From Rebecca billardiae RCC1528 (taxonomy: Eukaryota > Protista > Haptophyta): a stretch of 64,000 bases of DNA. The DNA is taken from assembly GCA_965240325.2 (NCBI GenBank), contig OZ251225.1:3038001-3102000 (forward strand), read 5' to 3'. Each line of letters starts with the position of its first letter. Position 1 is the stretch's first letter. Under the pieces are notes generated by a model. The model worked only from the letters and a program-made list of their open reading frames with translations, did not search any database and was not told the DNA's origin. Both the position numbers and the translations under genes were made by a program. Below, one piece after another: positions 1 through 55,167 of the stretch.

Positions 1-3000
1 GGGCGGGCGGTTCATCAGCACCTTCACCTCCGCGAACGCCGGCTGCTCGCCCCCCGTCACCGTCAGCGCGAACGAGTAGAGCGCGCCGGCGCGCAGCACG
101 CCCGAGCGGAAGGCGAGCGTCGGCCCGGCGGCGCCGGTCGTCGTGACGGCGGCGGACGCGAGGTCGAAGGGCGCGGGCACCTCGACGCCGGAGACGATGG
201 TGGACGCGCGCCACTCGTACGCGAAGCTCACCTCGCCGCGCGCCGCGAGCGCCGCCGAGCGCGCGTCCACGCTCGTCTCCAGCGCCACGCGCTGCGTGCC
301 CAGCTCCCAGCTCGGGTTGTACTTGAGCGCGGCCAGCGGCGCAAACGAGATCGTGGGCACGAGCCCAAGCACGACCTCGACGTTGACGGAGGCGGAGACG
401 CGCTGCACGGGCCAGCCGGCCTTGGAGAGGGTGAGCGTCACGCTCCAGTTCCCCACCTCGAGCTCGCCGCGCGGCACGAACAGCACGCGCGCGCTCGCGT
501 TCACGGCCGCGCCGAACGCCGACTCGAAGACGCCGGTGCCGTTCACGCGCGCGAGCGACCAATCAAACTCGAGCTCGGCGTCGACGGGCGCGCCGGCGTC
601 GTCGAGGACGAGCGGGACGTTGGGGTCGTACGAGGCGGACGCGTCGATCGCGACGTCCGACTCGGTGGAGACGCGCCGGTCGCCGCCCGAGACAATCGCC
701 TGCAGCGGCTGCGACTCCACGACCAGCAGCACGGTCGCGCTCGACGCCGCGCTCGGGTCGGCCGCCATCGCCGCGCGCAGCCGCAGCTCGTACGTGTACG
801 TGGGGAGCAGCGTGTACGCGTCGAGGAGGAGGGAGGGCTGGTCCGGCTCGAGCAGCCGCAGCGCGGGCAGCGCGGCGGGCTCGCCCGTCGCCGTCACCGT
901 CGCGTTGAGCTGCGCCCACGAGAAGTCGATCGTGGCGGAGTCGTTGGCCGGCCAGCAGTCGGCGAGCCGCGCGTTGCCGAGCAGCAGCACCTCGGACGAG
1001 GGGCGCGTGGTCAGCCGGTACGGGCCGTCGATCACGAGGGAGGGGTTGGCGCCGCCGGAGCGCGTGACGGTCCAGCGCTCCACCGCCGACTCGAACCCGA
1101 GGAACGACGCGACGCGCAGCAGGAACACGTACTGCGAGCCGTCGCCCGCCAGCCGGAAGTTGGCGCCCAGGTCAGACGGGATGCGCAGAACGTCGCGGTC
1201 TGGGGGCAGGCTCGCCAGCCGCGCGTTCAGCTCGTCGGCGATGTCGGAGAGGGCGGGGTCGACGCGCCACGTGTACTGCAGCGCCTTGATCCCGCCGCCG
1301 GACGACGCCGACGCGTCCAGCCGGATCTCCGCGTCGGGGCAGTTCGAGACCAGCGTCGGGCCGTTGAGCGCCGCGACCGGCCGCACGCACGCGGCGCACG
1401 GGAAGTCGACGTCGATGGTCGCGCTGAGGCCGACGGCGCACTCGACGGCGCCGGGGCACGCGCGGCCGAGGCCGAAGGGCCAGAGGACGTTGTCGCGCAG
1501 CGAGACCGTCGAGCCGGGCGCGAGCCCCGTCTGCGCGTTCAGCTGCGCCACCAGCGTCACGTCGTCGCGCCAGAAGCACTCGGGCTCGCTCTCGGCGGCG
1601 CCGCGGATCAGCGCGACGGTCGCGTCGTCAAAGACGACGGCGCACGGCGCGACGGAGGTCATGCCCGCGCGGTTGGTGGGCTGCGGGTCGAAGGTGAGGA
1701 CGAGCGTGGTCGCCGCGTCGTTGAACAGCGCCGAGACGATCGCCGGCTCGTGCAGCCCGTCGAAGCGGTACGCCAGCGCCGCGTCGGTGTACTGCTGCCC
1801 GTTGAGCGAGACGCTCACGGCCGCGCCGCCTTGCTTGCCGTACGACGTCACCTGCACGATCGAGGCGTCGGTGTACGACTCGGGCGCGGGGCCGACGGTG
1901 GGGCCGTAGCGCACGCGCAGGAACGAGGCCGTCGGCGCGCCGTACCCCACCTCGGCGTCCGCGAGCGCGCGGAACCCCGAGCCGCTGATCGTGGTGCGCG
2001 CGCCGCCATTCGCGTCGCCAAACGTGGGCGAGATTGCGCCGAGATCGGGCTCGTCATAGTACACAAACCGGATGGACGAGTCGGTGGTGGAGCCGGGGTC
2101 GCCGCGGTTGAGCGTGACGTCGAGCGTGGTGTTGCCCGGCGCGCCCGCCGCGCCCGTCGTGCAGAGCAGCCGCGTCGAGTCGAGCAGCGTCGCCACCGCG
2201 TCGCAGCCGCCCGAGCCGCCGAACGAGCAGCACAGCTGCCGCTCGCTGTCGGCGCCCGCCGCGTCGCCGTACTCGGCAAAGCCCGCGCCAAACACGGTGA
2301 CGACGGTGCCGCCGCCCACCGGGCCGCCGGGCGGGACGAGCGCGGTGACGCGCACGCTGCCGATGGCGTACAGCCGGAAGCGGATCTCGTCGAAGAAGTT
2401 GGGCACGAGCGACACGCCGTTGAGCAGCAGCCGCACCGCGTACTCGCCCACCGCCGTGCGCGCGGGCGTGGCGCACGCGGCGAGGCTCGGCGAGAGGACG
2501 GTGGCGCGCGAGCTGAGGACGCGCGCGAAGCCGGCGGGCGGCGCGCTCGTGCGCGTGAAGCGGCAGCGCGCGGCCGTGCCCAGCTCGACGAACCCCGTGC
2601 CCGACAGCGTCACCGACGTCCCCGCCGTCAGCGGCCGCCCCGCCGGGCTCCCCGACGTGACCGTCGCCGTGTAGAAGTCGAACGGCAGCGACGACGCGGT
2701 GAACGAGCCGCCATCGTTGAGCGAGAGCGAGACGTTGAAGGCGCCGGGCGCGCGCGTGGGCGAGACGTACGGCGCGACGCAGCGCACCGCGTCCACCCCC
2801 GCGTCGGGCATCGTCGCCGCCACGTCGCCGCGCCCCTCGAAGCGCACGCGCAGCCCGCCGTAGTCGGCAAAGTTGGCGCCGGAGATGGTGAGCGCGAGCG
2901 ACGCGACGCCTTGCGGCCCGCCGGGCGGCGTGAGCGCGCTCAGCGTGACGGCGCTCAGGTCGAAGTAGGTGAAGGCGCTGAGCACGCCGATCGGCTCGCG

Positions 3001-6000
3001 CGTGCGCGTGCCGTTCGCCGACGTCTCCGTCTCGTTCGCCAGCAGCTGCACGCGCACCTGCCCGGCCGCCTGTGAGACGGGCACCGGGCACACGATGCGC
3101 GTGCGGTTGATCAGACTCACGTCCACGACCGAGCCGCCGCCAAACACGCACTTGATCAGCTCGCGCTTCGCCGCGGCGGCGCCGAAGCCGGAGCCGCGGA
3201 TCGTGAGGCTCGTTGCGTCGCCGATCGCCGCGCCCGTCGGCGTGACGCCGTCCACCTGCGCGTTGGCGAACGGGTCCTCCGGGTAGGTGACCGAGAGCGA
3301 CGCGGCCGACCAGAGCCGCGCGCGCTGGCCGGCGAACGCAAAACAGAGCTGCAGCGCGGACGCGACGTCGGCGAAGGTGAAGGTGGCGACGCCGGCGTCG
3401 CTCACGTTGGTCGGCGCGCCGCTGAGCGAGCCGCCGCCGCCCTCGTCGCACGCGCTCGCGCCCGCGGGCACCCACCACGCCGCGTCGCCCGGACCGACCC
3501 CCGGACCCTCGAACGAAACCGCCTCGGGCTGCAGCTGCACCGCGATCGTCGCAAACGGCCCGGTGATCTCGAGCACGTCGAGCGTGAAGTTGGCGTAGTG
3601 CTTGTACGGCTTGGCCGCGGTGAAGCGGTAGCACAGCTCGTACGCGAGGCCGCCCTGCCCGCGCAGGAACGTGAAGCTCGACGAGCCCGCGGCGGAGACG
3701 GGCTGCGCGCCGCCGAACGCGAGCCGCGCGCCGCCGTCGCACCCGGCCGAGCCCGCGGCCACCCAGAAGGCCGCGTCCGCGCTGCTCACGCCAAAGCCGA
3801 CGTAGCCGACGCCGACGGGCGCGCCGACGAGCGTGCGCGCCGCGCCGGTGGTGCCGAACAGCGCGAACGTGTCGAGCGTCACGTTGGCGTAGTGCACGAA
3901 CGGCTCGGCGCCGAAGCGAAAACAGAGCGACGCGCGCGCGCACGCGTCAGCGCCGCCACCGCACGCGTCGGCGCGCACCGTGAAGGCCGCGGCGCCGTCC
4001 GCGTCCACGGCGAAGAGGCCGCCGTACGCGGCGCGCGCCCGCGCGCCCGCGAGCGTGTCGGGCGTGCAGTCCGCGCCGTCGAGCACCCAGAACCCCGTGT
4101 CGTCCTCGCGGATCCCCACGCCCTGCAGCGGCAACGACTCGGCCGCGTCCGCGACCGCGAGCGTCTCTGCCGGTCCCTGCACCTGTGCGGCGACGAGCGC
4201 GCGGCCGGCGTAGTAGCGGTACGGCTCGTCGGCGTGCTTGTAGCACAGCCGCGCGTCGGGCTCGGGCGCAAGCAGCGCGAACGTCGCGGTGAGGTTCGCG
4301 TCGAGCGGCTGCTCGCCGCCCAGCCATGCGCGCGGCGCCTCCGCCGCGCACGCCACCTCAGCGGTGCCGTTGCGCGGCACCCAAAACGCTCGGTCGCCCG
4401 CGCGCAGCCCGACGCCTCCAAACGCGATGGGCTTGGGCACTGCGCCGACCACGCCGAGCGCGGAGGTGGGCGTCTGCACGCTCAGCGCGTCGAGCGTGAG
4501 CGACGGGTACAGCACGAACGGCTCGGACGGCGCGGCGGCGGTGTGCGCGAAACAAAGGCGCAGCCCGAGCCCGGCGAGCGTCGGCGCGAACGTCGCGCGC
4601 AGCGACGCGTCGAGCGTGCGCGTGCCGCCGTACGCGCTCGACGGCTCGCCCGCGCACGCCGTCGCGCCCGCGCGCACCCAGCGCGCGCGGTCGCCGGGCG
4701 CGACGCCGTACCCGCCGAACGCGAGCACCTCCGGCACGCGCGCCACGAGCACCGACTCGGCCGGAGATTCGACGCGGAACACCTCGAGCTGCACGCCGCC
4801 GTACTCGACGGTGCGCGCGGCGGCGGAGGGCGCGGCGGCGGCCGCGTGCGTGTAGCACAGCCGCGCGCGCCCGCCCGCCGTCGTGCCGGCCGGCGTGAAC
4901 GCCACGCGGCCGTGCCCCGCCGTCGGCGCGGGCACGACCGGCTGCGCGCCGCCCAGCGCGGCCGACGGTCCTTCCGCGCACCCGGCCGCGTCCGCGCGCA
5001 CCCAGTACGCGCTGTCGCCCTCCGCGCCCAGCCCGGCGCCCTGCAGCGTGAGCGTCTCGGTCGCGCCGACCACCGCGACGGTGAGCGCGGGCCCGCTCAC
5101 CGTCACCACGCCCAGCTCGAGCGCGGGCGGCGCGGCCGCGCCGTACAGCCGCGGCGGCTGCTGGCCGAAGCGAAAGCACAGGTGCAGGCCGGCGCCCGCC
5201 GCGCCGAGCGGCGCGCTGAACGACGCGGCGCCGTCGGCGCCGACGGTGGCGGGGCCGACGAGCGCGCCGGCCGCGTCGGCGGCGCACGCGGCCGCGCCCG
5301 CGCCCACCCACCACGCCTCGTCGCCCGCCGCGACGCCCACGCCCTCGAAGCCGATCGGCGCGGCCACGCCCGCGATCAGCGTCGTGTTGGTCGGCCCGCT
5401 GAGCGCGTACGCGCGCGCGCCCACGCCGCCAAACCGCGCGGGCGCCTCGCCCTCGAACGCGAAGCACAGCTCGAGCCTCGCGCGGCCCTGCCCGTCGAGC
5501 GGCGGCCGCGCGGCGAGCGTGAAGTTGGCGGCCGAGCCGTCTGCACCGAGCCGGCCCACGCCGCCGTACTCGGCGCGCGCGCCGCCGTCGGCGCACGCGG
5601 CCGCGTCGTCGGGCTCGACCCACCAGAACCGGTCGGCCGCGCCGAGGCCGACGCCGCCCAAGCTCAGCACCGCCTCGACGCCCACGACGGCGGCCGTCTC
5701 CGCGGGCGTGAGCACCGCGAGCACGTCGAGCGTGACCGCCGCGTACAGCACAAACGGCCCGCCATCGACCGAATAACAAAGGCGGCGGCCGAGGCCGGCG
5801 GCGCCGACGGCGTGCGAGAGAGTGGCGGTGCCGAGCGAGCTGTTGGCCGCCGTGGCGCCCACGGTCGCGCTCGCGCCCGCGTCGGCGCACGAGGCCGCGC
5901 CCGCCGGCACCCAGTACGCGCGGTCGGCGAGCGACAGCCCCACGCCCGAGTGCACCACCGCCTCCGCCACGCCCGCGACCGCGCGCGTGCGCGCCGGGCC

Positions 6001-9000
6001 CGTCACGCCGCGCGCCACCGCGGTGAGCTGTGGGTAAAGTGAGTACGCGCCCAGCCCGGCGAAGCGGTAGCAGAGGACGAGCTCGGGCCGCGGCGCGCTG
6101 AACGTGAGGCTCGCGCTGCCGGCCGCGCCCACGCTCGCCGCGCCGCCGTGCGCCGTGCTCGCCGCCGCGCAGCCCGCGCTCGCCGCGGCGTCGGGCGTCA
6201 CCCACTTGAGCGCGTCGCCCGCGCCCACGCCCACGCCGCCGAGCGCCAGCGCGCGCGGCACGCCGCGCGTGAACGCGAGCGCGGCGCCGCCGGGCAGCGG
6301 CTCGAGCCCGAGCACGTCCAGCGTGCGCGCCTCGTACGGGGCGAACGGCTCGCCCGCAAAGCTATAGCACAGCACGAGCCCGAGCTCGGCGCCGTCGGCG
6401 AAGACAAAGTCGGCGCGCGAGCCCTCCACGTCCGCGCTCGCCGCGAAGGCGGATGGGTCGGAGCAGTTGGGCGGCGCGCGGGCCCACGCGGCGCGGTCGC
6501 CGCTCGCGACGCCCGTGCCGCCGAACGAGAGCCGCACGCTGCCGCCCGGCGCGGTGGGCGCCGCCACGCGCGCCGCCGAGGTCGAGGCGAGGTGCAGCAC
6601 GTCGAGCACGATCGTCGGCTCGAGCGCCCATGCGGTTTCGGCCGGCGCTCGGTAGCAGAAGGCGTAGGCGAAGCCGGCGGTGTCGAACGCCCAGGACGTG
6701 CGCCCGTCGGCGGGCAGGACCACCCCGTCATCGCCGCCGAAGCTCGGCTCGGACGGCGCGGAGCAGTTGCGGCCCCAGCGCACCGCCGAGCCCGCCGGCA
6801 GCCACCACTCGGGAGGGATGGTGAGCGTCTTGGCCACGCCCTGCACCGCACGGTACACCGTCGTGTTGGCGCGCGCGGGCGGCGGCGGGCTGGGCGGCGG
6901 CGGCGCGGGGCTGGGCGGCAGCGGCGGCGGGCTCGGCGGCGGGCTCGGCGGCGCGCTCGGCGGCGGCGGGCTCGGCGGCGGGCTCGGCGGCGGGCTCGGC
7001 GGCGGGGCCGGCGGCGGGCTCGGCGGCGCGCCCGGCGGCGCGCCCGGCGGCGGCGCGGGCGGCGGCTCAAAGTAGACGCAGCCGGAGGGCGAGGGCTCGA
7101 AGGTGGCGCTCGAGTCGTAGTTGGTCGCGTTGGCATCGCGGCAGCCCGGGTGCAGCTGCGCCGGCGCCGCCGCGAGCTCGAAGCCCAGCTCCTCGCTCAG
7201 CGACGCCACGGTCGCGTTGGCGAGGCTCGCTGACACGTCCACCTGCTGCGCGCTCGCCGGCTGGTACGCACTCAGGACGACCTCGACCGAGGCGGGCGAG
7301 ATCGCCTCGACGCGCCACTGCGCGGCGGGGACGCCCGTCAGCCGCGACATCCCCGACTTGAGCTCGGCCTGCACCTGCGGCGTCACGTCCTCCGCCGTGC
7401 CCTGCAGCGTGAGGCCGACGTAGGTTGTGCTGCCCGGCGGCGGCGGCGCGGGCGAGGGCGGCGGCGCGGGCGGCGGCGGCGGCGGCGGCGCGGGCGGGCG
7501 CGGCGGCGGGAAGGGCTCGACGCGGGGCGGCGGCGGCGGCGAGCTCGGCGGCGGCGGCGTGGACGGTGGCAGCGGCGGCGGGGAGGAGGGCGGCGGCGGC
7601 GAGGGCGAGGGCGGCGGGGGCGGCGAGGGCGGCGGCGCGGGCACGGGCGGCGGCGTCGGCGGCGGCGACGGCGGCGGCGACGGCGGCGGCGTGGGTGGCG
7701 GCGGCGGCGGCGGCGCGCCTGGCGGCGGCGAGGGCGGCGGGCTCGGCGGCGCGCTCGGCGGCGGAGGGCTCGGCGGCGGCGAGGGCGGCGGCCGCGGCGG
7801 CGGGCGTGGCGGCGAGCCCGGCGGCGGCGGGCTGGGGGGTGGCCCTGGCGGCGGCGCGGGCGGCGGCGACGGCGGCAGCGCGGGTGGGCTCGGGCTTGGC
7901 GGCGGGCTGGGAGGCGGCGACGGCGGCGGTGAGGGCGGCGGCGACGGCGGCGGCGTCGGCGGCGGGCTCGGCGGCGGCGACGGCGGCGGGGTGGGCGGTG
8001 GCGGTGATGGCGGCGGCAGCGGCGGCGGCGAGGGCGGCGGCGAGGGCGGCGGGCTCGGCGGGGCCCGCGGAGGAGGCGAAGGGGGCGGGCTCGGCGGCGG
8101 CAACGGACGGGGCGGCGGGCTCGGAGGCGGCATGGGCGGCGGCAAGGGCGGCGGCGTCGGCGGCGGCGGCGACGGGGGCGGGCGGGGTGGGCTTGCCGGC
8201 GGCGGGCTCGGAGGCGGGGTGGGCGGCGGCGGCGAGGGCGGCGGGCTCGGTGGCGGCAACGGAGGCGGCCGCGGCGGCGGCGAGGGCGGCGAGAGCGGAG
8301 GCGGCGGGCTCGGCGGCGGAAATGGTGGCGGGCTGGGCGGTGGGCTCGGCGGGGAAGACGGAGGCGGCGGGCTGGGCGGCGGGAAGGGCGGCGAGCTGGG
8401 CGGCGGGCTGGGCGGCGGGCTCGGCGGCGGCGGGCTTGGTGGCGGCACTGGCGGTGGTCGCGGAGGCGGGCTGGGCGGCGGCTGCGGGCTCGGCGGCGGG
8501 CTCGGCGGCGGGCTTGGCGGTGACGCTGGCGGCGGGCTCGGGGGCGGCGCCGGCGGCGGCGCCGGCGGCGGCGACGGCGGCGGGCTTGGCGGCGGGCTCG
8601 GAGGTGGGCTCGGCGGCGGCGTTGGGCTGGGAGGCGGGCTCGGCGGCGGGCTCGGCGGGGGGCTCGGCGGCGAGCTCGGCGGCGGCGAGGGTGGCGGCGA
8701 TGGCGGCGGGCGCGGGCTCGGAGGTGGGCTCGGTGGCGGCGTGGGGGGCGGAGACGGAGGTGGGCTCGGCGGCAGCGATGGCGGCGGCGAAGGTGGCGGA
8801 GATGGTGGCGGCGGGCTCGGCGGAGGACTCGGTGGCGGTGCGGGGGGCGGAGAAGGCGGGGGGCTCGGAGGTGGTGACGGCGGTGGGGTGGGAGGCGGCG
8901 GCGGCGGAGGCAAGGGCGGTGGGCTCGGCGGCGGGTTTGGCGGCGGCGATGGCGGCAGTGACGGCGGGGGGCTTGGCGGGGGGCTTGGAGGCGGCGGCGG

Positions 9001-12000
9001 CGGAGGCAAAGGCGGTGGGCTCGGCGGCGGGTTTGGCGGCGGCGATGGCGGCAGTGACGGCGGGGGGCTCGGCGGGGGGCTTGGAGGCGGCGGCGGCGGA
9101 GGCAAGGGCGGTGGGCTCGGCGGCGGGTTTGGCGGCGGCGATGGCGGCAGTGACGGCGGGGGGCTCGGCGGCGGGGTCGGCGGCGGTGGCGGCGGAGGTG
9201 ACGGTGGCGGCCTTGGCGGCGGCACTGGGGGCGGCGATGGGGGCGGTGACGGCGGGGGGCTCGGCGGCGGGGTCGGCGGCGGCGGCGGCGGAGGCGACGG
9301 TGGCGGCCTTGGCGGCGGCGCTGGCGGCGGCGATGGGGGCAGTGACGGCGGGGGGCTCGGCGGGGGGCTTGGAGGCGGCGGCGGCGGAGGCAAGGGCGGT
9401 GGGCTCGGCGGCGGGTTTGGCGGCGGCGATGGCGGCAGTGACGGCGGGGGGCTCGGCGGGGGGCTTGGAGGCGGCGGCGGCGGAGGCAAGGGCGGTGGGC
9501 TCGGCGGCGGGTTTGGCGGCGGCGATGGCGGCAGTGACGGCGGGGGGCTTGGCGGGGGGCTTGGAGGCGGCGGCGGCGGAGGCAAGGGCGGTGGGCTCGG
9601 CGGCGGGTTTGGCGGCGGCGATGGCGGCAGTGACGGCGGGGGGCTCGGCGGGGGGGTCGGCGGCGGTGGCGGCGGAGGTGACGGTGGCGGCCTTGGCGGC
9701 GGCGCTGGCGGCGGCGACGGGGGCGGTGACGGCGGGGGGCTCGGCGGCGGGGTCGGCGGCGGTGGCGGCGGAGGTGACGGTGGCGGCCTTGGCGGCGGCG
9801 ATGGCGGCGGCGATGGCGGCAGTGACGGCGGGGGGCTCGGCGGCGGGGTCGGCGGCGGTGGCGGCGGAGGTGACGGTGGCGGCCTTGGCGGAGGCGATGG
9901 CGGCGGCGATGGGGGCGGTGACGGCGGGGGGCTCGGCGGCGGGGTCGGCGGCGGTGGCGGCGGAGGCGATGGTGGCGGCCTTGGCGGCGGCGATGGCGGC
10001 GGCGATGGCGGCAGTGACGGCGGGGGGCTCGGCGGCGGGGTCGGCGGCGGTGGCGGCGGAGGCGACGGTGGCGGCCTTGGCGGTGGCGATGGCGGCGGCG
10101 ATGGCGGCAGTGACGGCGGGGGGCTCGGCGGCGGGGTCGGCGGCGGTGGCGGCGGAGGCGATGGCGGCGGCCTTGGCGGCGGCGATGGCGGCGGCGATGG
10201 CGGCAGTGACGGCGGGGGGCTCGGCGGTGGGGTGGGAGGCGGCGGCGGCGGAGGCAAGGGCGGTGGGCTCGGAGGCGGGTTTGGCGGTGGCGATGGCGGT
10301 GGTGACGGCGGCGGCATCGGTGGTGGTGATGGCGGGGACGATGGCGGCGGCGACGGCGGTGGCCTCGGAGGCAGCGATGGCGGCGGCGACGGTGGCGGCT
10401 CTGGGCTCGGCGGCGGGCTGGGAGGCGGCGACGGTGGCGGTCTCGGTGGTGGCGATGGCGGTGGGCTCGGCGGCGGGCTTGGCGGAGGCGACGGCGGCGG
10501 CGGGCTCGGCGGTGGGCTGGGAGGCGGCGATGGCGGCGATGAGGGCGGAGGTGACGGTGGCGGCCTTGGTGGCGGCTGGGGCGGCGGCGATGGTGGCGGC
10601 TGTGGGCTCGGCGGTGGGCTCGGTGGTGGCGATGGTGGCGGCGATGGCGGAGGCATCGGTGGTGGTGATGGCGGTGGCGACGGCGGCGGTGACGGTGGCG
10701 GTGGGCTGGGCGGCGGGCTGGGAGGCGGCGACGGCGGCGACGATGGCGGCGGCGACGGCGGTGGCCTCGGAGGCAGCGATGGCGGCGGCGACGGTGGCGG
10801 CTCTGGGCTCGGCGGTGGGCTTGGCGGTGGCAATGGTGGCGGCGATGGCGGTGGCATCGGCGGTGGTGACGGCGGTGGCGATGGTGGCGGCAATGGCGGC
10901 GGCATCGGTGGTGGTGACGGCGGCGGCGACGGCGGCGGTGACGGCGGTGGCGGGCTCGGCGGCGGGCTGGGAGGCAGCGATGGCGGCGGCGACGGTGGCG
11001 GCTCTGGGCTCGGCGGCGGGCTTGGCGGTGGCGATGGTGGCGGCGATGGCGGTGGCATCGGCGGTGGTGACGGCGGTGGCGATGGCGGTGGTGATGGCGG
11101 CGGCATCGGTGGTGGTGACGGCGGCGGCGACGGCGGCGGTGATGGCGGTGGCGGGCTCGGCGGCGGGCTGGGAGGCGACGACGGCGGCGGCGACGGTGGC
11201 GGCTCTGGGCTCGGCGGCGGGCTTGGCGGTGGCGATGGTGGCGGCGATGGCGGTGGCATCGGCGGTGGTGACGGCGGTGGCGATGGCGGTGGTGATGGCG
11301 GCGGCATCGGTGGTGGTGACGGCGGCGGCGACGGCGGCGGTGATGGCGGTGGCGGGCTCGGCGGCGGGCTGGGAGGCGACGACGGCGGCGGCGACGGTGG
11401 CGGCTCTGGGCTCGGCGGCGGGCTTGGCGGCGGGCTTGGTGGCGGCGATGGCGGTGGCATCGGCGGTGGTGACGGCGGTGGCGATGGCGGTGGTGATGGC
11501 GGCGGCATCGGTGGTGGTGATGGCGGTGGCGATGGCGGCGGCGATGGTGGCGGCGGGCTTGGCGGCGGGCTGGGAGGCGGCATAGGTGGTGGTGACGGCG
11601 GTGGCAATGGTGGCGGTGGGCTCGGCGGCGGGCTAGGCGGCGGCAGCGGCGGTGGCGATGGCGGGGGTACAGGTGGCGGCAGCGATGGTGGCGGCGGCAG
11701 CGGCGGTGGACTGGGAGGCGGTGCTGGCGGCGGTGATGGCGGTGGTGAGGGCGGCGGCAGCGATGGTGGTGGCGGCAGCGGCGGCGGGCTGGGCGGCGGC
11801 GCTGGTGGCGGCGATGGCGGGGGCGACGGCGGCGGCAGCGATGGTGGCGGCGGCAGTGGCGGCGGGCTGGGCGGCGGCGAGGGCGGTGGCGACGGTGGCG
11901 GGCTGGGCGGTGGGCTCGGCGGCGGCACCGGTGGCGGCGGCGACGGCGGCGGGCTCGGCGGCGGGCCAGGCGGTGGGCTCGGCGGCGGTAGCGGCACAAT

Positions 12001-14601: not shown

Positions 14602-15049
14602 GGCGGTGTCGATGAGGCCCCACACAAGCTTCGCAACGGAGCGAACGGCGGCGTGGCGAGCGAGAGAACTAGTTCTCGGTTACGACGAGTCGGTCGGTTT
14701 CCGTTTCGATAGCGGCGCCTGCGCACGAAAATAGCACCCGAGCAACGGCATATCGTTTTGCGGGTACAGGTGGGTACTCCGTGCTGCCGAAACGCGGGCT
14801 TGTCGAGGCGGTCGCTCGGCATGCGCTTTTCTGGCGCGGGATTCTGACCATCAGGTTTCCGAACAGCCGAGGAAAGTTGCAGGAAATCTGTGGCTTCGTC
14901 ACCGCGTGCTAAACGCCCGCGGCGGAAGGCGGACCCTTTGTGTGTGGTACGATCGTGCAGCTCAAGAACAAGTAGCGCGGCCGGTTCTGCTCGGCGCGTG
15001 CCAGCGGGTGAATCGCGCGGATCAGCGCAGCCTCCCTCCCCCTCCGTTG

Positions 15050-18000
15050 ATGGAGACGCTCAAGAAGATGGCGAGCTCGCCTCGCTTCTCGCTCGGGAAG
15101 CGGCGCGGCAGCGCCGAGGACGCGACGCTCGACGGCGACGACCTCGCGCGCGGCGTCGCCCACCTCAACGACGCGACCATCCTCAAGACGCTGCACGAGC
15201 GGTACGACTCGGGCGTGATCTACTCGTCGGTGAACCGCATGCTCATCGCCGTCAACCCGTACGCCGACCTCGGCCTCTACACCTCGCAGCGCCTGGCCGA
15301 GTACGCCGAGCTCGCCGCCGAGCGCGCGCCGCCGCCGCACGCGTACGCGATCGCGGCCGCGGCGTACAAGGGGCTGCTGGCAGGGGGCTCGCAGTCGATC
15401 GTGATCACGGGCGAGTCCGGCGCCGGCAAGACCGAGACGGCCAAGCGCATGATGCAGTTCCTCGCGTACATGGCCGGCGCGCACGTGGGCGACGCGACCG
15501 CGAGCCTCAAGCTCGAGCTCGGACCGTCCGACGACCGCAAGTCGGCGGCCGCGCTGCACGTGACGCTGCTGCGCACGAACGCGGTGATGGAGGCGTTCGG
15601 CAACGCGCGCACGACGATGAACGACAACTCCTCGCGCTTCGGCAAGTTCCTCGCCGTGCAGTACGACGCGTCCGCCAAGCTGCTCGGCGCGCAGATCAAC
15701 ACGTACCTACTGGAGAAGACGCGCGTCGTGCGGCGCGGCGAGGGCGAGGCGTCGTTCCACGTGCTGTACATGGTGCTGCTCGGTCTCGGCCCGTCGGAGG
15801 CGGGGCAGCTCGCGCTCACGCCCGACCCGCACGCCTACCGCTACGCGCGCCTCCGCGGCGCCGAGCTCGACGGCTCGGGGCGCGAAGGCCTCTCATGGCC
15901 CGCGCAGCTCGCCGAGGTGCGCTCCGTGCTCACCGGCGCGATCGGGCTGGGGGCGGCGGACGTGTGGGCGATCCTCGGCGTGCTCGCGGCGGTGCTGCAC
16001 TGCGGGAACATCGACTTCGCCACGCCCGCCTCGGGCCACACCTCCACCGGCGCCGCGCTCAACGAGGGCGCGCTCCGGCCGCTGCGCGCGCTCGCGACGC
16101 TGCTCGGCATCGAAGCGGGCAAGCTGTGCGACGCGCTCACGACGCGCTGCATCCGCGCGGGCACGGAGTGGGTGACGAAGCCGAACACGACGCGCGAGGC
16201 GACGGACCTGGCGGACGCGCTGGCGAAGCAGCTGTACGCCCGCGTCTTCGACCGCGTCGGCGCGGCGATCAACGCCGCGATCGGCGTGGGCCGCGCGGCG
16301 GCGGACGGCGGCGCGCCCACGGCGTCGGGCGCGGCCGCGCCGGTCGCGCACTCGTTCATCGGCATCCTCGACATCTTCGGCTTCGAGCTGTTCGCGGAGA
16401 ACTCGCTGGAGCAGCTGCTGATCAACTACACGAACGAGCAGCTCCAGTCGCTCTTCAACGGCGTCGTCTTCGCCGCCGCGCTCGCCGAGGCGAAGCTCGA
16501 GGGCGTGTCGATGGCGGCGTTCGACGAGGGCTCGGTCGACAACCGCGACGTGCTCTCTCTCTTCAACGCAGAACGGGTCGGGCTGGTGCCCACGCTGAAC
16601 GAGGAGTGCATCTTCCCGAAGGGGTCGGACGAGTCGTTCGTGGCCAAGTTCAAGCGCGCCAACGCCAAGAACGCGCGGCTCGTCGACGACTCCTCCAACG
16701 CCAAGGCCGACCCGAAGGGCACGTTCACGGTCCGCCACTTTGCAGGGCTCGTCACCTACTCGGCGGAAGGGTTCCTGCTCAAGAACAAGGACCCGTTCTC
16801 GGAGGACCTGGCGGCGCTGCTGCGCGGCTCGTCCGAGCCGCTCGTCGGCGCGCTCTTCGCGCCGCCCACCGCCGAGCGCACCTCGTCCAAGCGCTCCGGC
16901 GCCTTCCAGCGCCTCGTCTTCCGCGGCGTCGCGCCGCAGTTTGAGGCCCAGCTGCAGCGGCTGCTGCGCGTGCTGCGCGCGTCCCAGGTGCACTTTGTGC
17001 GCTGCGTCAAGCCGAACGGCGAGAAGGCGGCGCGCAGGTTCGAGGACGAGCGCGTGCTCGCGCAGCTGCGCTGCGGCGGCGTGATGGAGGCCGTCCGCGT
17101 CTTCGCCGCCGGCTACCCCGACCGCATCCCCTTCGACACCTTTGCGGCGCGCTACGGCCTCTTGGCCGGGCCGGCGTGGGCGGCCGAGTGGGGCGCGCCG
17201 CCCGCGCCGCCCAGCCCGGCGTCGAGCGGCTCGGCGGGCGGCGGCGGCGGGAGCGGCGGCGGCGCGGCGGCGTCGGCGGAGCGCGTGCGCGCCCTCCTCG
17301 CCGCGATCGCCATCCCGCCCGAGCGCTACGCCCTCGGCCACTCGAAGCTCTTCCTCAAGTCGGGCGTGGCGCCCGAGCTCGAGCTGCGGCGCGAGCGCAA
17401 GGTTGCGGCGCGCGCCGTGCAGTGCCAGGCGGCCGTGCGCGGGATGCTCGCGCGCGCGCACGCGCGGAGGCTGGCCGCGGCGGCGCGCGAGAGCACCGAG
17501 CGCCGGCGCAAGGCGGACGAGTCCGCGCGCGCCCTCGACGAGCTCGAGCGCGCCACCGAGGCCGAGCGCGTGCGCGAGCGCGAGCAAGAGGCGGCGCGCG
17601 CTCGCGAGGAGAGTGCTCGCGCGGACGAGGCGGCGGCCGCGGCCGCGGCCGAGGCGGCGCGCTCGCGCGAGGCGGAGCGCGCGCGCGACGCGGAGCTGCT
17701 CGCCGCGCGGCAGCGCGCCGCCGAGCTCGAGGCGGCGCTCAGCACCGCGCGCACCGAGGCCGACGGCCTGCGCACGCAGGTGGCCGCCGCCGCGACCAAT
17801 CCCGCCGCGGCCGCGCCGCCGCCGCCGCCGCCGCGGCCGACGACGCCCCCGGGCGCGTCCGCCGCCGCCATCGAGGAGGCGAAGGCGACGGCGAAGCGCG
17901 CGCTGGAGGAGGTGTCCGAGCTGCGCGCCGCGCTCGAGCGCGCGCGCGACGAGATCGTGCGCGAGCGCGCCGCCAACGAGAAGCGACGCTCCGAGGCGGA

Positions 18001-25765: not shown

Positions 25766-25939
25766 CGTCGCCTGAGCCGGAGTCGATGTCGTCGTCGTCT
25801 CGTCGATACTTTGGCATCAGTCTTTATTTTTTTCTAAATGTCGTCTGATCAAATTGATGAGCCTGCCACTGGTGAGCAGCCTCCTGGCTGATTATTGAGA
25901 CGATCGATCGACCGGCGATTCAGTCACTACAGTACTCAT

Positions 25940-29814: not shown

Positions 29815-29847
<33 letters not shown>

Positions 29848-42371: not shown

Positions 42372-43054
42372 CTACTGGCCGCCGCCTGCGTCGAGGTCGA
42401 TGACGTCACCATCGCCGCCAAAGTCGTCGCGCATGCGGCTGCGCCGCTCAGGTGCGCCTGTGCGCATCGCTTCGGCCGCGGTGGCAGGCTCTGAGTCGCG
42501 CAGCCCGTGCACCTGCGCAGCGAGTGCCCCCTGCTCCGTGAGCGCGCGGCTCTGCTGCTCGTTCGCTCGGTCCACGCTGCGGCCGATGCGCAGCAGGGCC
42601 TTGTGCACCGAGTCGGCGAAGCCGCCCGCCGGGTTTGTTGCGCCGGCGCGCTCGGCGTCCGGCGCGCGGAACTCCCGGCCGTACTTGCGCATCACGTGTG
42701 TCGCCATCACCGCGCCGAACAGCTCGGTCAGGTCGCGCAGGCCGAGGTGCGAGCCCTTCTTGAGCAGCGTCTGCTGCGAGCGCATGAGCACGCGCGCCAT
42801 GTGCGCATCGTCCACGGCCGTCGCTTCCTCCGAGAGAGCGGCGATCAGCTGCGCGCGCCGCTCGGCCGAGAGCGCGCCGCCTGCGGCCGGCTTGGCGGAC
42901 AGCCGGCTTCCGGGGCTGCGCACGCGCCGCAGGGAGCGCACGCGCGGCAGCCGGCGGGCCGCGTCGCCGCCCTCGGGCGCCGTGGTGGGCGCCGCCGCGC
43001 CCGCGCGAGCGTCGGCCCCGTCGGCCAGCGTCCCCTCGGCCGGCTTGACGGTTG

Positions 43055-43085
<31 letters not shown>

Positions 43086-43088
43086 GCC

Positions 43089-43119
<31 letters not shown>

Positions 43120-45976
43120 CCGCTGGCCCAGCGCGCGCGCGCGCGTGCGCACGCTGTGAGCGCCCAGCGCGCGCCCTCGCGCACGTCCTGGGCGAGGTTG
43201 ATGCCCACGTCCAACCCGATTGCAAAGAGGGTGGGCTCGTCCTCCGCCGACTGCCGCGCGAGGATGTACGCGTCGATGACGATCGCGAGCAGCACGTTGA
43301 GCAGCAGCAGGTAGCACGTGGCAATGTACAGCCTGGCGGGCAGCAGGGCGCGCGGGTGAGCGCGGCGCCGGTGCGTGTGCGCGGGGCGGCGCGCGTGCCG
43401 TGAGCGACGGCGGGCGCGGGCCGCCGTCCCCGGGGTGCCTCGCCCGCGCGCACGTGCGCGCCCGCGCGCCCCGGTGCCGTCTCCTCACCAGAAGAAGACG
43501 TGCCCGATCTGCGCGAACTCGAGGTCCGTGAACGCGCGGTGGTCGAACGCGCCGATCAGCACGAGCAGCAGCGTGGACACCGCGGCGCCGAGGGTGTTGA
43601 ACGCGTCGCTGCTGCCGAGCAGCAGCGTCGCCGCCACGCCGAAGCCGAGGGTGATCAGCGAGAAGAGGACGAAGAAGTAGGAGAGGTCGGCGCGCGCGTT
43701 GGCCACGATGCTCGAGATGGTCGACAGCCGGCGGTGGAAGAGGCAGTACTGCGGAGGCGGCGGGGCAGGCGGAGCGGTGGCGGCGCGCCAAGCAGCTCGG
43801 CCGCAAGGCGCGCGCGCGCACGCGCGGCGCGTGCGCGCGCGCGCACGCGCACCTTGAACATGCGCTGCAGCAGGCACACGATCGCGAAGCTGCCCGCGTA
43901 CGCCATGGACGAGGACACGGCGCTCGAGTCCATCACCAAGAACGTGAGCGTGACGAGCGCGCTCAGCAGCACGTTGTCGTCTGCGCTCAGGCTGCCGCTG
44001 CTGGACGTGCGCGCGTCCACGACGGTGAAGACGGCGTTGGACTGCGCGGTGTACGCCTCGAGCACGCCCGCGAGCACGGCGTACCCCCAGCACGCGCCGA
44101 GCGCGACGAGCTCGATGAGCAGCCAGAGCGGGTGCTGCGCCGCGTGCTCGGCGGCGCGCAGCGCGCGCGCCGCGCCGCCCGAAATGTGCGAGCCCCAAGT
44201 GCTCAGCCCGAGCATGTTTGAGCCGACTGAGGTGCCGAAGGCGGAGCGCTCGCGGAGGAGCAGCCGGCGGCCGCGCGACACGCGCTTGCGCAGCTGCGCC
44301 AGCCACGCCTTCAGCCGCGCCTCGAGCTCGGACTGGCACGCGACGAGCGCGCGGCCCGCGCGCAGCAGCAGCAGAACGGAGTCGAGCACGATCAGCCCAA
44401 ACACGACGATTGTCAGCGGCCGGCCGCGCACACGGAACTCGAGCGGCGTCGAGGCGACGTGGAGCGAGCGCTGCACGGCGCCGCCCGGGGTGTAGTCGAA
44501 GCGCGCGCGCGCGCTCGCGAACCGGCCGATATTGCCGTTGTACACGTTGAGCGTGAGGAAGATGGACGCGGTCGAGAGGTCGAGCCAGCCGTCCGCGCGC
44601 GACTGCGCGAGCACGCTCGCCGAGAAGCCGGGGGGCACTCCGCCAAACTGGCCGACGTCGAGCGGCAGGATGAAGAGGAGGCGGCTCGGGATGTCGTCGA
44701 TCAGCGCGTCCGTCGACTCGTACACCGTGCGCTCGCCGCCGATCTCGCCGAGCGGCCGCACCCCCGAGTCCTCGCCCTCGCCAAACTCCGCCGGCCGGTA
44801 CACCGTCCCAGACAGCTGCCCGCGGAACGGCTCGGACGAGAGCCGCGAAGGGTGGACGCACCGCTCGAGGAAGCGCTCGTACCGCGGGCACTCGCGCGTG
44901 TCGTACCGCGCCTGCCACACGAAGAGGCCGCCGATGATGCGGTTCGACTTGTCCAGCATCCCGCTCAGCAGCTCGCCCGCTGGCTCCGCCTCGAGCCGTC
45001 GGCGGCCGGGCGGCGTGCGCGGCGCGCGCGCGCTCGGCTGCGGCTGCGGCTGCGGCCGTGGCTGCGGCGGCGGCGGCGGTGGCTCGTCGGCCGAGGCGAG
45101 GGCGCGTGCGCCGCCCGAGGTGGCGTTGCTGCCACCGTCCCGCGCGGCGCACGCGGGCTCGGCCGGAAAGACGGTGCAGTGCGCGTCGATCAGCGCGGCA
45201 CAGGCCGTCGCGGCCGACGGCACTTCCTCGGCCGCGGCCGAGCTGTTGCCCTCCGAGCTCGCCGCGGGCGGCGCGCTGCCGTCGGCCGCCCACGGGGCGC
45301 ACACGGTGTTGGCGCACGGGTTGGTCGGCCCGGGCGCGGCATACGCGCACGGCGCGCCGCCACCGGCGCCCGCTGGCGGCGCGAACGTGGCGCAGGCCGC
45401 GTCGGACGGGTGCGCGGCGCAGTGCGCGCCGATCAGCCGCGCGCACGCGGCCGCGTCCGCGTCCACACGCGCGCCCTCGCCGAAGAGCGTGTGCGCGCAC
45501 ACGGCGTTGAGGCACGGGGACGTGGGCGCGCTCGCCGCGCCGAAGGGGCAGTACGTCGAGCGCATGAACGTGTCGTAAGACGCGCGGTCGCGCCGCGCCT
45601 GGCCCGTGTCGTACAGCGCGCGCGACAGCGCCTCGATGTACGCCCACGTGCTGTCGATGTCGACGACGTCCTCGCGCGTGGTGGGGAGCTGGTCCGAGTC
45701 GAACGCCTCGACCAACTGGCGCTCCATGCGGTACGCCGCCTGCTGGTTCGTCGTGATGCTCACGAAGCTGATGATGACCGAGACGTACCCGAGATACCCG
45801 AGCCAGCTCGCAAAACCGCTGCGCCGCCGCCGCGCGACGTGGATCGAGGCGAAGAGCACGGAGAGCGGCACGCGACGTGCGAGCATGCGCTTCCGTACCG
45901 CCTTCCCGCGCCACACCGCAGCCATGCGAGTGGCCGCCCGCACGCCCGGCTCGCTGGGCGTCGCGGGCGTCTCCAT
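42372..45976 (-). CDS. PKD2: Polycystin-2 / TRPP-family cation channel, paralog A, ~1114 aa. Exons 45976-43853, 43748-43489, 43332-42372
   Basis: TOP-domain DGWLDLSTASIFLTLNVYNGNIGRF...FDYTPGG; S4 LLQRMFKYCLFHRRL; S5-pore-S6 DLSYFFVLF...FNTLGAAVSTLLLVLIGAFD...FFWLYIATCYLLLLNVLLAIVIDAY. Two frame-preserving GT-AG introns. Symbol is family-level. Confidence 0.9.
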
Positions 45977-47089: not shown

Positions 47090-48460
47090 ATGGGGTCATC
47101 CTCATCGATCGCACGCCCCTGCTCACTTGCCTACTACTGCGCACTCGTCGCGCTCGCAGTCGCGCGTCGCGATGGGATCAGCTTCCCCACGTTTGCAGCT
47201 GACGCAGCCGTCCATGCGCTCGTGGTTGATCCGCCGCGCGTGAGCGATCGCGGCCTGCACACCATCACGACGCACGCCACCGCGCTGCGCATCGTCATGC
47301 GCGAGCGCAAGCGCTGGCTGAGCGACACTGTGACGGTTGCAGCCGAGCATACGCCGATGTTTTGGCTATTCACGCCGCAGCGCAACGAGACCGAGCGCAG
47401 AGTCGAGTGCAACATGGGCTGCGTGTGGATGCGCCGCGTTGGCTCTGACACCCGAGCCAATGCGACTGCCTTCGTCCTCGACAAGCCGTACAGGCCTGGC
47501 CGGCTCAAGCACGTTCGGCAAAGCGCCCAACGCGTGATCTTTGCGAGCCCCGAGAACCGCGCCGGCCACGCGGAGGCGAGGACGCTCGCGCAGAAAGGCC
47601 GCCAGGGCGAGCGCGTCTTCGCGCCGCGCGACATCCTCGTCTCGTATGAGCTGGACGCGACGGTGCCGGGCGTCAATTACATGGGCTCGCTGCTGAACCA
47701 GTCGCCGGACCTGTCGCGGCAGCAGCCGTTGCCGGGCGCCGAGGCCGGGGCTCAGCCGACGGAGCGGCCCGGGGGGCGGGCGCCTCTCGGCGCGAGCGGC
47801 CTGCCGCTCCAGGACCCGCAGCGCAAGCGGCGCGACGCCGCCGTTGCCGCGTTCATCTCCAATTGCAATGGACCTGCCGGCGGCGGCGCGGGTCGACTCG
47901 ACGTGCTGCGCGCGTTGGCCTCGCACGGCGTGCCCGTGCACCAGTATGGCAAGTGTGAGCACACCCAGGGCCTAGCCGCGGACGACGGGCCAGCGCACCA
48001 CAGCTCGGCCGTCCGCTGGAGCGGCAAGGCGCGCCGCGCAGCCGACTACCGATTCTTTGCCGCGTTCGAAAATTCGCAGACGATCGACTACGTCACGGAG
48101 AAGGTATTCGACGCGCTCAGGTTGGGCACGGTGCCGCTGTACCTCGGCGCGCCCAATGTGCACGACCTGCTGCCGTGCGAGCCACCGGAGCGCTGCGTGA
48201 TCGAAGTCCGCCGCTTCGTCGATCGCGACGGCCTCTTCGACGCGCCGCAGCTGGCGGCGCACCTGCAGCACCTCGCCACCAACGACACGGCGTACCTCGA
48301 GTACCACAGCTGGCGCGCCAAGCCGCTCCCGCAGCGCGTGCTCGACCTGGCCGAGATCCACCGCCACGAGGTGGCATGCCGCGTGTGCCACTGCATCGCA
48401 GGTCGGCTGCCCGGCTGTCGCCAGACCACAGCCCTCGGGAAGGCTGCTGCTGTCATCTAA
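47090..48460 (+). CDS. Alpha-1,3-fucosyltransferase (GT10 family)
   Basis: N-terminal hydrophobic anchor; AAFISNC; VHQYGKC; signature YRFFAAFENSQTIDYVTEKVFDALRLGTVPLYLGAPNV; AYLEYHSWR. Confidence 0.93.
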   Translation: MGSSSSIARPCSLAYYCALVALAVARRDGISFPTFAADAAVHALVVDPPRVSDRGLHTITTHATALRIVMRERKRWLSDTVTVAAEHTPMFWLFTPQRNETERRVECNMGCVWMRRVGSDTRANATAFVLDKPYRPGRLKHVRQSAQRVIFASPENRAGHAEARTLAQKGRQGERVFAPRDILVSYELDATVPGVNYMGSLLNQSPDLSRQQPLPGAEAGAQPTERPGGRAPLGASGLPLQDPQRKRRDAAVAAFISNCNGPAGGGAGRLDVLRALASHGVPVHQYGKCEHTQGLAADDGPAHHSSAVRWSGKARRAADYRFFAAFENSQTIDYVTEKVFDALRLGTVPLYLGAPNVHDLLPCEPPERCVIEVRRFVDRDGLFDAPQLAAHLQHLATNDTAYLEYHSWRAKPLPQRVLDLAEIHRHEVACRVCHCIAGRLPGCRQTTALGKAAAVI

Positions 48461-51565: not shown

Positions 51566-54500
51566 ATGGCGGCCGCGCTCCTGGCGCGGCGGCGATCCAA
51601 GGAGCGCCAAGAGCTCCAGCTGCAGAAGGAGCAGGAGGAGCGCCGCCTGCACGATGAGCAGGACATGCTCTACGCGGCCACCCGCATGGCCGCCGTGTGG
51701 CGCGGGAAGCTCGTGCGCAAGCACAAGGTGGAGCGCCGCGTGCCGGTGAGCGCGTTGATCACGTCCATCCACGTCGCGCGCGTCAGGCGCCAAGGCTTGG
51801 TGCAGTTCGTCGTGTACCTCGCGTACGTTGCCGTGCTCGCGGTGTTCACCTACACGAGCTTCGACCAAGGCACGGCGCTCGCCGTGGAGAAGCAGCTGCG
51901 CGCCGCGTTCGACTCCGACTCGCTCGGCACGAAGCGCTCGGACGTGGTCGACCTCGACTCCGCGTGGGGCTACATCGAGTCGGTGGCGACGACGCTGTAC
52001 GACGAGGGGCAGCACGTGCGCAATGCCGCGAGCTGGAGCGCGTTCCTCACCTCGGCGTGCCCCTTCACCGCCGACACACCCAGCTCGCCGTGCCAGAACA
52101 GGGCGTGCTCGACCACGCTGCGCGGCGGCACGCCCAGCGCCGCCGAGGCGGCGGCGTGCAACGCGCTGATCGGCTCGCACTGCGCGGCGCACGCGGACGA
52201 GTGGTACTGCGGCGTGCTGGCGGCACAGTCGCCCCCGGCCGGCGCCGGCGCCACGTTTCCGTGCGCGTACGCCGACGCCGGCCCGACCAACCCGTGCACC
52301 AACGCGGCGTGCGCGCCGTGGGCGGCCGACGGCAGCGCGCCGCCCGTTGACGGCGCCAACTCGACGGAGGACGGCTCGGCAGCTGCGCGCACGCCGGCGT
52401 CCGTCGCGTGCGCCGCGATCATCCGCGCGCACTGCGCGGCCTTTCCGGCCGAGCCCGCGTGCAACGCGAGCGCGCCCGCCGCGTCGAGGCGTCTGCTCGA
52501 GCGCCCAATCGAGGCGGCGCGGGGCAGGCAGGCCGGGCGCGCGGCCGCCGGCCGGAGGCTGAGCGGCGACGCTGACGACGACGACAAGCCCGACGACCAG
52601 GATCGCGTGGCGATGGTCGACGCGTCGAACAAGGCCATCGGCCCGCTGCTCGTGTGGCACGCGCGCTACCGCGTGGGCACCTGCGAGCGCTTCAGCACGT
52701 TCCTGCGCACGTGCGTGCGGGCGGGTGCGTACTCGCGCGCCGGCTTCACGGGCGCACTCACCGGCCGGAGGTACACACCCGGCCGCGTCGAGGACGCGGA
52801 CCTGGGCGTCGACATGAGCGCGCGGCCGGACGAGACGCTCCCGGACGGCACGCCCAGCGTGTACACCACCTTCGAGCCCCTCGTCGACGACATCTCGCCC
52901 GACGACCTGTACATGATGCCCGTGGACGTGGGTAATTACGGGGTGCCGTTGAGCACGGTGCTGACGCTCGCGCGGCGGCACAGGGCGGACGGGTGGCTGG
53001 ACGAGTCGCTCTCGGTGCTGCTGCTCACGCTGAACGTGTACAACGCGAACGTGCAGCGCTACGCCAGCGTGCGCGCGCGCTTCGACTTCACCCGCGGCGG
53101 GCTCGTCGAGCGCTCGCTCCGCATCGCCACCACGCCGACCGCCTTTTGGCTGCGCGCGCGCCCACTCGCGTGGGCGGTGCTGGTGCTTCTCTGGCTGGAC
53201 TCTGCGCTGCTGCTGGCGCGCGTGCTCCGCGCGCTCGTGGCGTGCTCGCACTCGCTCAACGAGCGCCTCGAGGCGTACCTCGAGAAGCTGCGCAAGCGGA
53301 TGGACCGGGGCGCGCGCGTGCTGCGCCGCCAGGCCACCTCCTCATCCTCGCTCGGCTCCGTGCAGAGCGGCGCGCTCCGGCGCTGGGGCGGCGCGGCCGA
53401 GCAGAGCGAGGCGGCGAAGGCGCTGCGCGCGGCGGAGCAGGCGGCGCAGCGGCCGTGGTGGCTCGTGGTCGAGGTGCTCGCGATCCTGGCCTTCTGGTAC
53501 TACGTCCTCCTCGCCTTCTCCGTCGAGGAGCTCACGGCCGAGACCAACACGCTCTTCGAGTTCATCGCGCGCCGCGGCACGTCGGACACGTCGGCCGCGG
53601 TGCTGAGCAAGATGGTGACGCTCACCTACCTGGTGATGGACACGGCGCGGAACGCCTACTACATGAGCTACTCCGCGAGCATCGCGATGCTGTGCCTGCT
53701 GCAGCGCATGTTCAAGGTGCGCCTGCGCGCGCGCGCGCGCGCAGCCCGCGGCCGCGCGCGCCCTGAGCAGCGCGCGGCCGCACTGCGCGGCGCTCTCCGC
53801 CTGCCCCGCCGCCTCCGCAGTTCTGCCTCTTCCACCGCCGGCTGTCGACCATCTCGAGCATCGTGTCCAACGCGAGCGCCGACATGTCCTACTTCCTCAT
53901 CCTCTTCGTGATGATCTCCGCGGGCTTCGCCGTCGCCGCGACCATGCTGTTCGGCAGCACAAACGCAAAGTTCACGACGATAGGGGCGTCCGCGTCGACA
54001 CTCTCTCTCATCCTGCTCGGCAGCTTCGAGCACGCCGAGTTCGTCGCCCTCGACCCGCCCGAGATGGGGCACGTCTTCTTCTGGTGCGCGCGCCACCGCG
54101 CCCTCGCCCCCGCGCCGAGCCGCCCGCGCGTCCACGCCCTCACGGAGCGCCCGGCTGGGCCGGCGCTCGCGCGGTGCCATCGTCCGCGCCGGCGCCGCCC
54201 TCGCGCGCGCGCCCCGCTGCCCGCCAGGCTGTACATCGCCATCTGCTACCTGCTGCTGCTCAACGTGCTGCTCGCCATCATCCTCGACGCGTACATCCTC
54301 GCCAAGCAGTCCGCGGTGGACGAGCCGACGCTCGGCGCCGTCGCGCAGGATGTGCTGATCAACTCTGCGCACGACGCGCACGACGGCTGCCGCTTCGTCG
54401 GCAAGCTGGCCGTGCGGCTGTGGGCGCGCCGCGCCCGGCGGGCCGAGGAGGCGGCGGAGGCGGGTGCCAAGGCAGAGCGCGGCGAGGCGGGGGGCGCGGG

Positions 54501-55167
54501 CGAGGGCATCGGCGCGCAGCCGGCTCGGCACGGGCCGGGCGAGGCCGCACCGTTACCCGCCTCTCCCAGCCTCACCGTCGGCGGCGGCGCCGACGCCGCA
54601 GGCGTGCGCCGCCCCTCGCTGCTGCGCCGTCTGCCACGCGTCAGCAGCATGGGCCGCGGCGCGCGGCTGCAAGGCACGCTCACGGCCGAGCGGCGAGCCA
54701 ACCTGATCGCCGCGCTCTCCGAGACGTCGAGCGCGGTGGACGACGCCAAGGTCGCGCGGGTGCTCATGCGCTCCAAGAAGGCGCTGCTCAAGAAGCGCGA
54801 CTCGCACCTCAGCCTGCGCGACCTGACTGAGCTCTTTGGCGCGCTGATGGCGACCAAAGTCATGCGCAAGTACGGGCAGGAGTTCCGCGACGAGACGCCG
54901 GAGCACATCCGGATGCTGCAGCTGGCGTCCTTCGAGGACTCGGTCGCGCACGCGCTGCTGCGGATCGGCCGCGCGATGGATCGCGTCAACGAGCAGACGC
55001 GCCGCACCATCAACGACCAGGAGAAGCTCGCTGCTGTGGTGAGCGAGCTGCACACGCCCGCATCTACGCCGCCGGTGTCGGCGACCCGCCGCGGCAGGGC
55101 AGGTGCTGGTGATGCTGCTGACGAGAGCGGCGTCATCGAACACAGTGCCAACGGGCTCTTTAGATGA
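51566..55167 (+). CDS. PKD2: Polycystin-2 / TRPP-family cation channel, paralog B, ~1117 aa. Exons 51566-53716, 53821-54083, 54228-55167
   Basis: DGWLDESLSVLLLTLNVYNANVQRY...FDFTRGG; LLQRMFKFCLFHRRL; LSLILLGSFE; LLLNVLLAIILDAY. Intron positions and phases identical to paralog A. Symbol is family-level. Confidence 0.9.

Follow-up and report, generated by a model that had tools for sequence, protein, structure and literature searches.

The window analysed here is a stretch of 64,000 nucleotides from the haptophyte Rebecca billardiae RCC1528 (assembly GCA_965240325.2, contig OZ251225.1, positions 3,038,001 to 3,102,000 of the forward strand), with a guanine-cytosine (GC) content of 60-84%. It holds a giant gene for a stalked surface protein with a REJ domain, a myosin gene with a WW and Tubby tail in head-to-head orientation to it, and, further along, a pair of polycystin-2-type channel genes. 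An earlier reading made from the sequence alone (the sequence-only reading) had taken the genes in positions 1 to 55,167 for a candidate polycystin sensory module, which together with glycosyltransferases would build and deliver a glycosylated sensor of the flagellum or haptonema. Our analysis finds each of these genes to be real and, in all probability, functional. That they lie so close together is probably, though by no means certainly, a coincidence of the neighbourhood, arising most likely from family size and local duplication and not from a dedicated module. Because GC-rich DNA can stay open over long distances in more than one reading frame, coding frames were picked by codon-position GC content together with domain matches. 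Positions are those of the window throughout.

A giant stalked REJ surface protein

The giant gene (1-14,601, minus strand) is partial, since it continues past the window start. A single minus-strand frame is open from 14,679 to position 1 (GC content at third codon positions 0.88), is supported by Pfam matches at both of its ends, and gives at least 4,867 codons from an ATG at 14,601. Its first part (13,192-14,601), delimited by Pfam and motif positions, consists of a signal peptide and an integrin-alpha-like FG-GAP head, a propeller in which five loops are of the DxDxDG type (FG-GAP_3 E 9.3e-15, FG-GAP E 5.2e-14, FG-GAP_2 E 1.7e-10). The head is followed by an extensin-like Ser-Pro(3-4) rod (7,384-13,332; amino acids 424-2406), visible in its composition, in a strong GC skew and in a GC content of 80-84%. 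The roughly 1,940 residues of the rod are 72% proline and 16% serine, arranged in SPPP and SPPPP units; it is probably hydroxylated and glycosylated, and as a polyproline-II helix it would extend over about 0.6 micrometre. Between the rod and the next recognisable part lie a small globular section and another, short run of prolines. Some 11 tandem repeats of about 100 residues each (3,202-6,800), recognised by the spacing of the motif LC[YF]x[FH], gave no Pfam match at E<=1 and belong to no known family.

The last part within the window (1-3,201) comprises five IPT/TIG stretches (TIG E 8.7e-28 in 5 stretches) and then the REJ domain (PF02010), which occupies nucleotides 1-939, covers profile positions 11-314 of 452 before the window edge cuts it, and scores 84 bits (E 1e-23) against a cut-off of 25 bits. 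The sequence-only reading had called the giant PKD1-like. As far as the window reaches, the REJ domain is the one element behind that label, and it stands; the other hallmarks of polycystin-1, namely a GAIN/GPS cleavage site, a PLAT domain and 11 membrane helices of which the last six are channel-like, would precede the window start. The giant may be described as a putative representative of the head-on-a-rod REJ receptors, a large family, and would combine a calcium-binding propeller, a rod and a REJ-type base. Most likely it would act as an adhesion sensor, or form a hair on the cell surface or the flagellum.

A myosin with a WW and Tubby tail

The myosin gene (15,050-19,880, plus strand) lies head-to-head with the giant gene, just as the sequence-only reading had described it, the two ATGs being separated by a divergent intergenic region of 448 bp (14,602-15,049). 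According to the predicted splice model, exon 1 (15,050-19,135) and exon 2 (19,350-19,877, with the stop codon at 19,878-19,880) flank an intron with GT..AG ends at 19,136-19,349. This model is matched by an ortholog, P0005, a transcript-like contig of 5.0 kb from two JGI samples that is 64-75% identical to the window myosin: its alignment starts at 15,050 and skips 19,136-19,349, including the GT and AG ends. The motor (approximately 15,155-17,359; Myosin_head E 1e-167) makes up the N-terminal 875 residues and is intact: the motifs GESGAGKT, NDNSSRFGK and DIFGFE are all readable in the translation. One IQ motif and a coiled coil of about 300 residues follow. The WW domain (18,692-18,766; Pfam WW E 3.2e-6), together with the helical segment preceding it, is 42% identical to the N-terminus of frog CEP164 (E 1.6e-11), in agreement with the CEP164-like domain reported earlier.

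The remaining tail (approximately 18,866-19,877) had been read as Tubby-like, and this identification is upheld by three lines of evidence. All of them use residues 1290-1535 of the P0005 transcript, a naturally spliced stand-in for the tail of the window myosin. The Pfam Tub model matches neither the two tail exons of the window nor the tail of the ortholog. A HMMER full-library search with the P0005 tail returned seven real relatives, all of them WW or myosin tails, and their alignment (A1) ends in Y-x-D-P-I-T-P-x-QAF-H-V-A-L. Compared as a profile with the PDB, A1 matched over the whole domain only TULP1 (E 1.7e-6), TULP3 (E 1.8e-4) and Tubby (E 1.8e-3). An AlphaFold (AF2) model of the P0005 tail computed with A1 reached a predicted local distance difference test score (pLDDT) of 77.5 and a predicted template modelling score of 0.79. 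With this model as query, the top 7 Foldseek matches were all Tubby or TULP1 (E 2e-10 to 2e-8), at template modelling (TM) scores of 0.60-0.73; the eighth had a TM score of 0.16. Because of the profile matches to the PDB, the AlphaFold model and the Foldseek matches, the tail is confirmed on the ortholog P0005 as a true, divergent Tubby domain, modelled as a barrel of 12 strands around a C-terminal helix.

Three other lines on the tail were given up. LOR/LURP1 and scramblase, suggested as its identity by an Atlas value of 0.87, were replaced by the direct Tubby match, and a single-sequence fold of the tail was discarded at a pLDDT of 33. The basic RKRKRSK strand of TULP1 was dropped as a lipid site, since the residue count puts K268/R270 of TULP3 elsewhere.

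Taken as a whole, the protein is a myosin of the WW/Tub-tailed kind of stramenopiles and haptophytes, with an intact catalytic motor and probably a dimer, and its Tubby barrel would attach to a membrane or to a cargo site. Published descriptions of class XXI, from stramenopiles and haptophytes, already include myosins that carry IQ, WW and Tub domains in the tail (PMC3942036). The window myosin, from a haptophyte-type lineage, resembles them in its order of head, IQ, WW and Tub-type tail, a likeness in tail architecture. It departs from the class XXI description in that its Tubby domain is too divergent for the Pfam Tub model.

A pair of polycystin-2-type channels

Channel gene a (42,375-45,976, minus strand; exons 45,976-43,853, 43,748-43,489 and 43,332-42,375) and channel gene b (51,566-55,164, plus strand; exons 51,566-53,716, 53,821-54,083 and 54,228-55,164) have predicted lengths of 1,114 and 1,117 codons. 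Domain searches were run exon by exon on these splice models, each exon being kept separate. The PKD_channel domain (PF08016; S4-S5 linker, S5 and pore helix) is found in exon 2 of both genes, at 25.5 bits in gene a and 26.2 bits in gene b, in either case above the Pfam gathering score of 22.4. The Polycystin_dom (PF20519), which is the TOP domain between S1 and S2, scores 26.8 bits in gene a, above the gathering score of 23.6, and 21.5 bits in gene b, below it. Six hydrophobic helices can be read by eye from each translation, a reading made without a topology program. Of 18 PDB matches listed, 17 are polycystins (polycystin-2, PKD2L1, PKD1L3) and all of these are significant; the remaining one is unrelated (E 0.96). 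Both genes are therefore TRPP channel genes, as had been proposed. The sole relative found outside the window, on a 5.2-kb contig (L003), is 36% identical and shows the same three-piece gene calls.

The channels share an identical three-exon layout. Their nucleotide identity of 73-74% marks them as the two products of one old inverted duplication. They therefore count as one event in any clustering statistic. In each of them the TOP domain, which is extracellular, contains a cysteine-rich insert. The acidic residue of the pore, D643 in human PKD2, is missing from both. Gene b has L-G-S at the positions of human L641-G642-D643, by alignment to human polycystin-2 (54,010-54,030, plus strand), and gene a has I-G-A, by alignment to its paralog (43,500-43,560, minus strand). 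The proteins may serve as pore subunits of a non-canonical kind, or else form channels whose selectivity is altered. The second-best PDB match to the channel is PKD1L3, itself a non-canonical pore subunit. In the cytosolic N-terminus of both channels there is an IQ-like motif, AATRMAAVWRGKxVRK (45,800-45,900, minus strand; 51,670-51,730, plus strand), which at 13.9 bits stays below the Pfam IQ cut-off and is a possible candidate for a calmodulin or light-chain site.

Glycosyltransferase candidates

Three glycosyltransferase-like genes had been counted among the members of the proposed module. One of them stands: a gene of the alpha-1,3/4-fucosyltransferase-like family GT10 (47,090-48,457, plus strand; Glyco_transf_10 E 9.5e-28), whose relatives carry PF00852 and PF17039, lies between the two channel genes and head-to-head with channel a. 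The next candidate, a type-II membrane protein (55,763-57,253, plus strand), is situated just beyond positions 1-55,167. Its assignment to GT15, an alpha-1,2-mannosyltransferase family, is a feature-based lead (Atlas 0.97, with 204/256 features shared and 20/20 matches in the Glyco_transf_15 set), and the open reading frame (ORF) gave no Pfam match. A third candidate was not identified. The ORF at 20,429-22,783 (minus strand) has no family match in Pfam or the PDB, and nothing supports a reading of it as a glycosyltransferase.

Likeness to known systems

The closest precedent for a link between such proteins is the mastigoneme of Chlamydomonas. Like its component MST3 (PMC11015965), the giant would be a secreted protein with a signal peptide, domains of lectin or adhesin type and long poly(Pro/Hyp) rods (Hyp, hydroxyproline), and PKD2-type channels are present in the same genome. 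Unlike the giant, MST3 has a PKD2-like pore domain of its own and no REJ domain; the base of the giant is of REJ type, with its membrane part beyond the window. Also unlike the mastigoneme, no gene for an MST1-like sheath or a SIP-like protein was seen in the window.

Among animal proteins, the giant shares with polycystin-1, PKDREJ and sea-urchin REJ a REJ domain that has Ig-like (TIG) domains ahead of it, and it differs from PKD1 by its FG-GAP head and its Ser-Pro rod of about 1,940 residues. The channels in turn correspond to animal polycystin-2 in their six helices, TOP (polycystin) domain and PKD_channel pore module, and they differ from human PKD2 by a serine or alanine at the D643 position.

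The myosin tail is like TULP3 and Tubby in its fold, a barrel around a helix, and in the C-terminal helix signature Y-x-x-P-[IL]-x-x-x-QAF. A likeness in function to TULP3 is weaker. TULP3 needs an N-terminal helix that binds the intraflagellar transport complex IFT-A, and K268/R270 for binding to phosphatidylinositol 4,5-bisphosphate (PI(4,5)P2) (PMC5350516). In the myosin the motor occupies the N-terminus, where TULP3 has the IFT-A-binding helix (no helix search was made), and the columns of K268/R270 in the hidden Markov model alignment, a sequence alignment without structural superposition, are gaps in both P0005 and the window myosin.

Common neighbourhood or functional link

The giant/myosin pair and the channel group are separated by 22 kb (20-42 kb) that contain a CGI-121 gene, a PHM-like gene, the secreted protein at 20,429-22,783 and satellite DNA. 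The three upstream regions concerned, those of the giant/myosin pair and of the two channels, share no common words beyond GC-rich low complexity. Word searches with the GT10 gene, the channel and the myosin tail yielded only distant matches or transcripts, contig look-ups yielded transcripts or contigs of 1.5-5 kb, and a metagenome scan found relatives at 29-60% identity only. On one contig of a relative (L004), visible on its downstream side, the gene after the myosin tail differs from the one in the window.

How often such a neighbourhood would arise by chance was estimated by random placement with assumed, plausible family sizes. On this basis the expected number per genome is 0.16 to 2.7 for REJ-TRPP pairs within 55 kb, and 0.01 to 0.37 for REJ genes that directly adjoin a WW-type myosin. 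Myosin families of haptophytes can be large: Emiliania huxleyi has 53 myosins (PMC3942036). As a rough estimate, the result runs from unlikely to expected with family size, and chance is neither excluded nor shown. We regard the window as an unexceptional stretch of genes in an alga whose DNA is very rich in GC, in which members of three expanded families would have come to lie side by side, probably without a functional link. Three points weigh against this. The exact triple of REJ, myosin and TRPP genes is expected only 0.0002 to 0.017 times per genome under random placement with minimum assumed family counts; this triple was singled out post hoc, among about 1,200 windows and many families to which the label ciliary could be given. 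The head-to-head pair at 448 bp could share a promoter. Moreover, in Chlamydomonas the giant Hyp-rich MST3 forms a complex with PKD2 (PMC11015965), a precedent which by analogy makes a link between a rod and polycystins biologically reasonable.

All the components are present in the window for a scenario in which the giant would serve as a glycosylated hair or sensor resembling a mastigoneme. Its base would join both PKD2-like subunits, much as MST3:SIP or PKD1 associates with PKD2, the WW-Tubby myosin would carry it to the base of the flagellum or haptonema, and the glycosyltransferases close by would add its sugars. The scenario has precedents in MST3-PKD2-SIP (PMC11015965) and in the TULP3-dependent transport of polycystins (PMC5350516), and the non-acidic filters of the channels would suit heteromeric or anchoring subunits. 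It nevertheless has to bridge 22 kb of unrelated DNA between the two gene groups, the membrane part of the giant, with any channel-like half that could enter a PKD2 tetramer, is outside the window, and the myosin has no visible counterpart of the IFT-A-binding end of TULP3, although no search aimed at such a helix was made. The glycosyltransferases do not fit easily either: to our knowledge, GT10 and GT15 are not among the enzyme families that glycosylate Hyp/Ser-rich rods. We consider the scenario unlikely as a whole. Its more specific form is still more doubtful, namely that the giant rod protein, two PKD2-like subunits lacking the filter and the Tubby-tailed myosin are the haptophyte counterpart of the mastigoneme-PKD2 complex of Chlamydomonas, with an actin motor bearing a Tubby cargo domain in place of the IFT-A/TULP3 delivery route to flagellum or haptonema. 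If such a link were true, the anchoring of extracellular glycoprotein rods to polycystin channels would be older and more widespread than green algae, and a Tubby domain could be linked with an actin motor in place of intraflagellar transport.

A link could also be confined to the pair of giant and myosin, co-regulated from the 448-bp divergent promoter, with the motor positioning or anchoring the cytosolic end of the receptor and the channels being unrelated. Besides the head-to-head arrangement itself, this would draw on direct adjacency, the least chance-prone element of the neighbourhood by the estimate given above, and on the expression of the myosin ortholog in a relative (transcripts L001 and L002). 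Divergent gene pairs are, however, common in compact genomes, and on the relative's contig L004 the gene downstream of the myosin tail is a different one. We hold this possibility to be improbable too. Within 15 kb the order is channel a, GT10, channel b and the GT15-like gene, and these four might form a small local unit in which the glycosyltransferases modify the cysteine-rich insert of the TOP domain, independently of the giant. Nothing beyond adjacency points to such a unit, the GT15 assignment is a feature-based lead, and on the relative's contig (L003) the sole neighbour called for the channel is short and truncated where the contig stops, so that no glycosyltransferase is recognisable in this product, for which no family was looked up. 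Such a unit appears very improbable. A coincidental neighbourhood is our preferred explanation, and what the locus offers at present is description: a myosin tail with a divergent Tubby domain that has been verified, a polycystin-2-type channel pair without the pore aspartate, and a stalked REJ receptor as member of a large family.

Other features of the window

The secreted protein at 20,429-22,783 is encoded by an intact ORF of 785 codons with a signal peptide; its two halves of about 350 residues each are 42% identical and rich in conserved Cys, Arg and Trp. It is followed by the CGI-121 gene (25,247-25,816), identified by Pfam, and by a PHM-like copper type II monooxygenase (26,182-27,381, minus strand), both domains of which were matched (E 1e-16 and 5e-12). 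PAM, an amidating enzyme related to it, reportedly has ciliary roles. The ORFs at 27,538-28,500 and 28,482-29,084 and eight others in 27,409-37,370 gave no match to a transposase or any other Pfam family, and none of the ORFs in 29-42 kb has a Pfam match. The region of 29-40 kb is satellite-like, about 11 kb in all, with tandem repeats of 43, 165 and 200 bp in 29.3-36.3 kb. Within it, a perfect 295-bp tandem duplication at 39,242-39,831 (2.0 copies, 100% identity) points either to an artefact of the assembly or to an event of very recent date. Towards the far end of the window, outside positions 1-55,167, a multi-helix ORF (60,568-61,980) precedes an ORF on the plus strand (61,712-63,193) that ends in a C-type lectin domain (E 2.9e-12).

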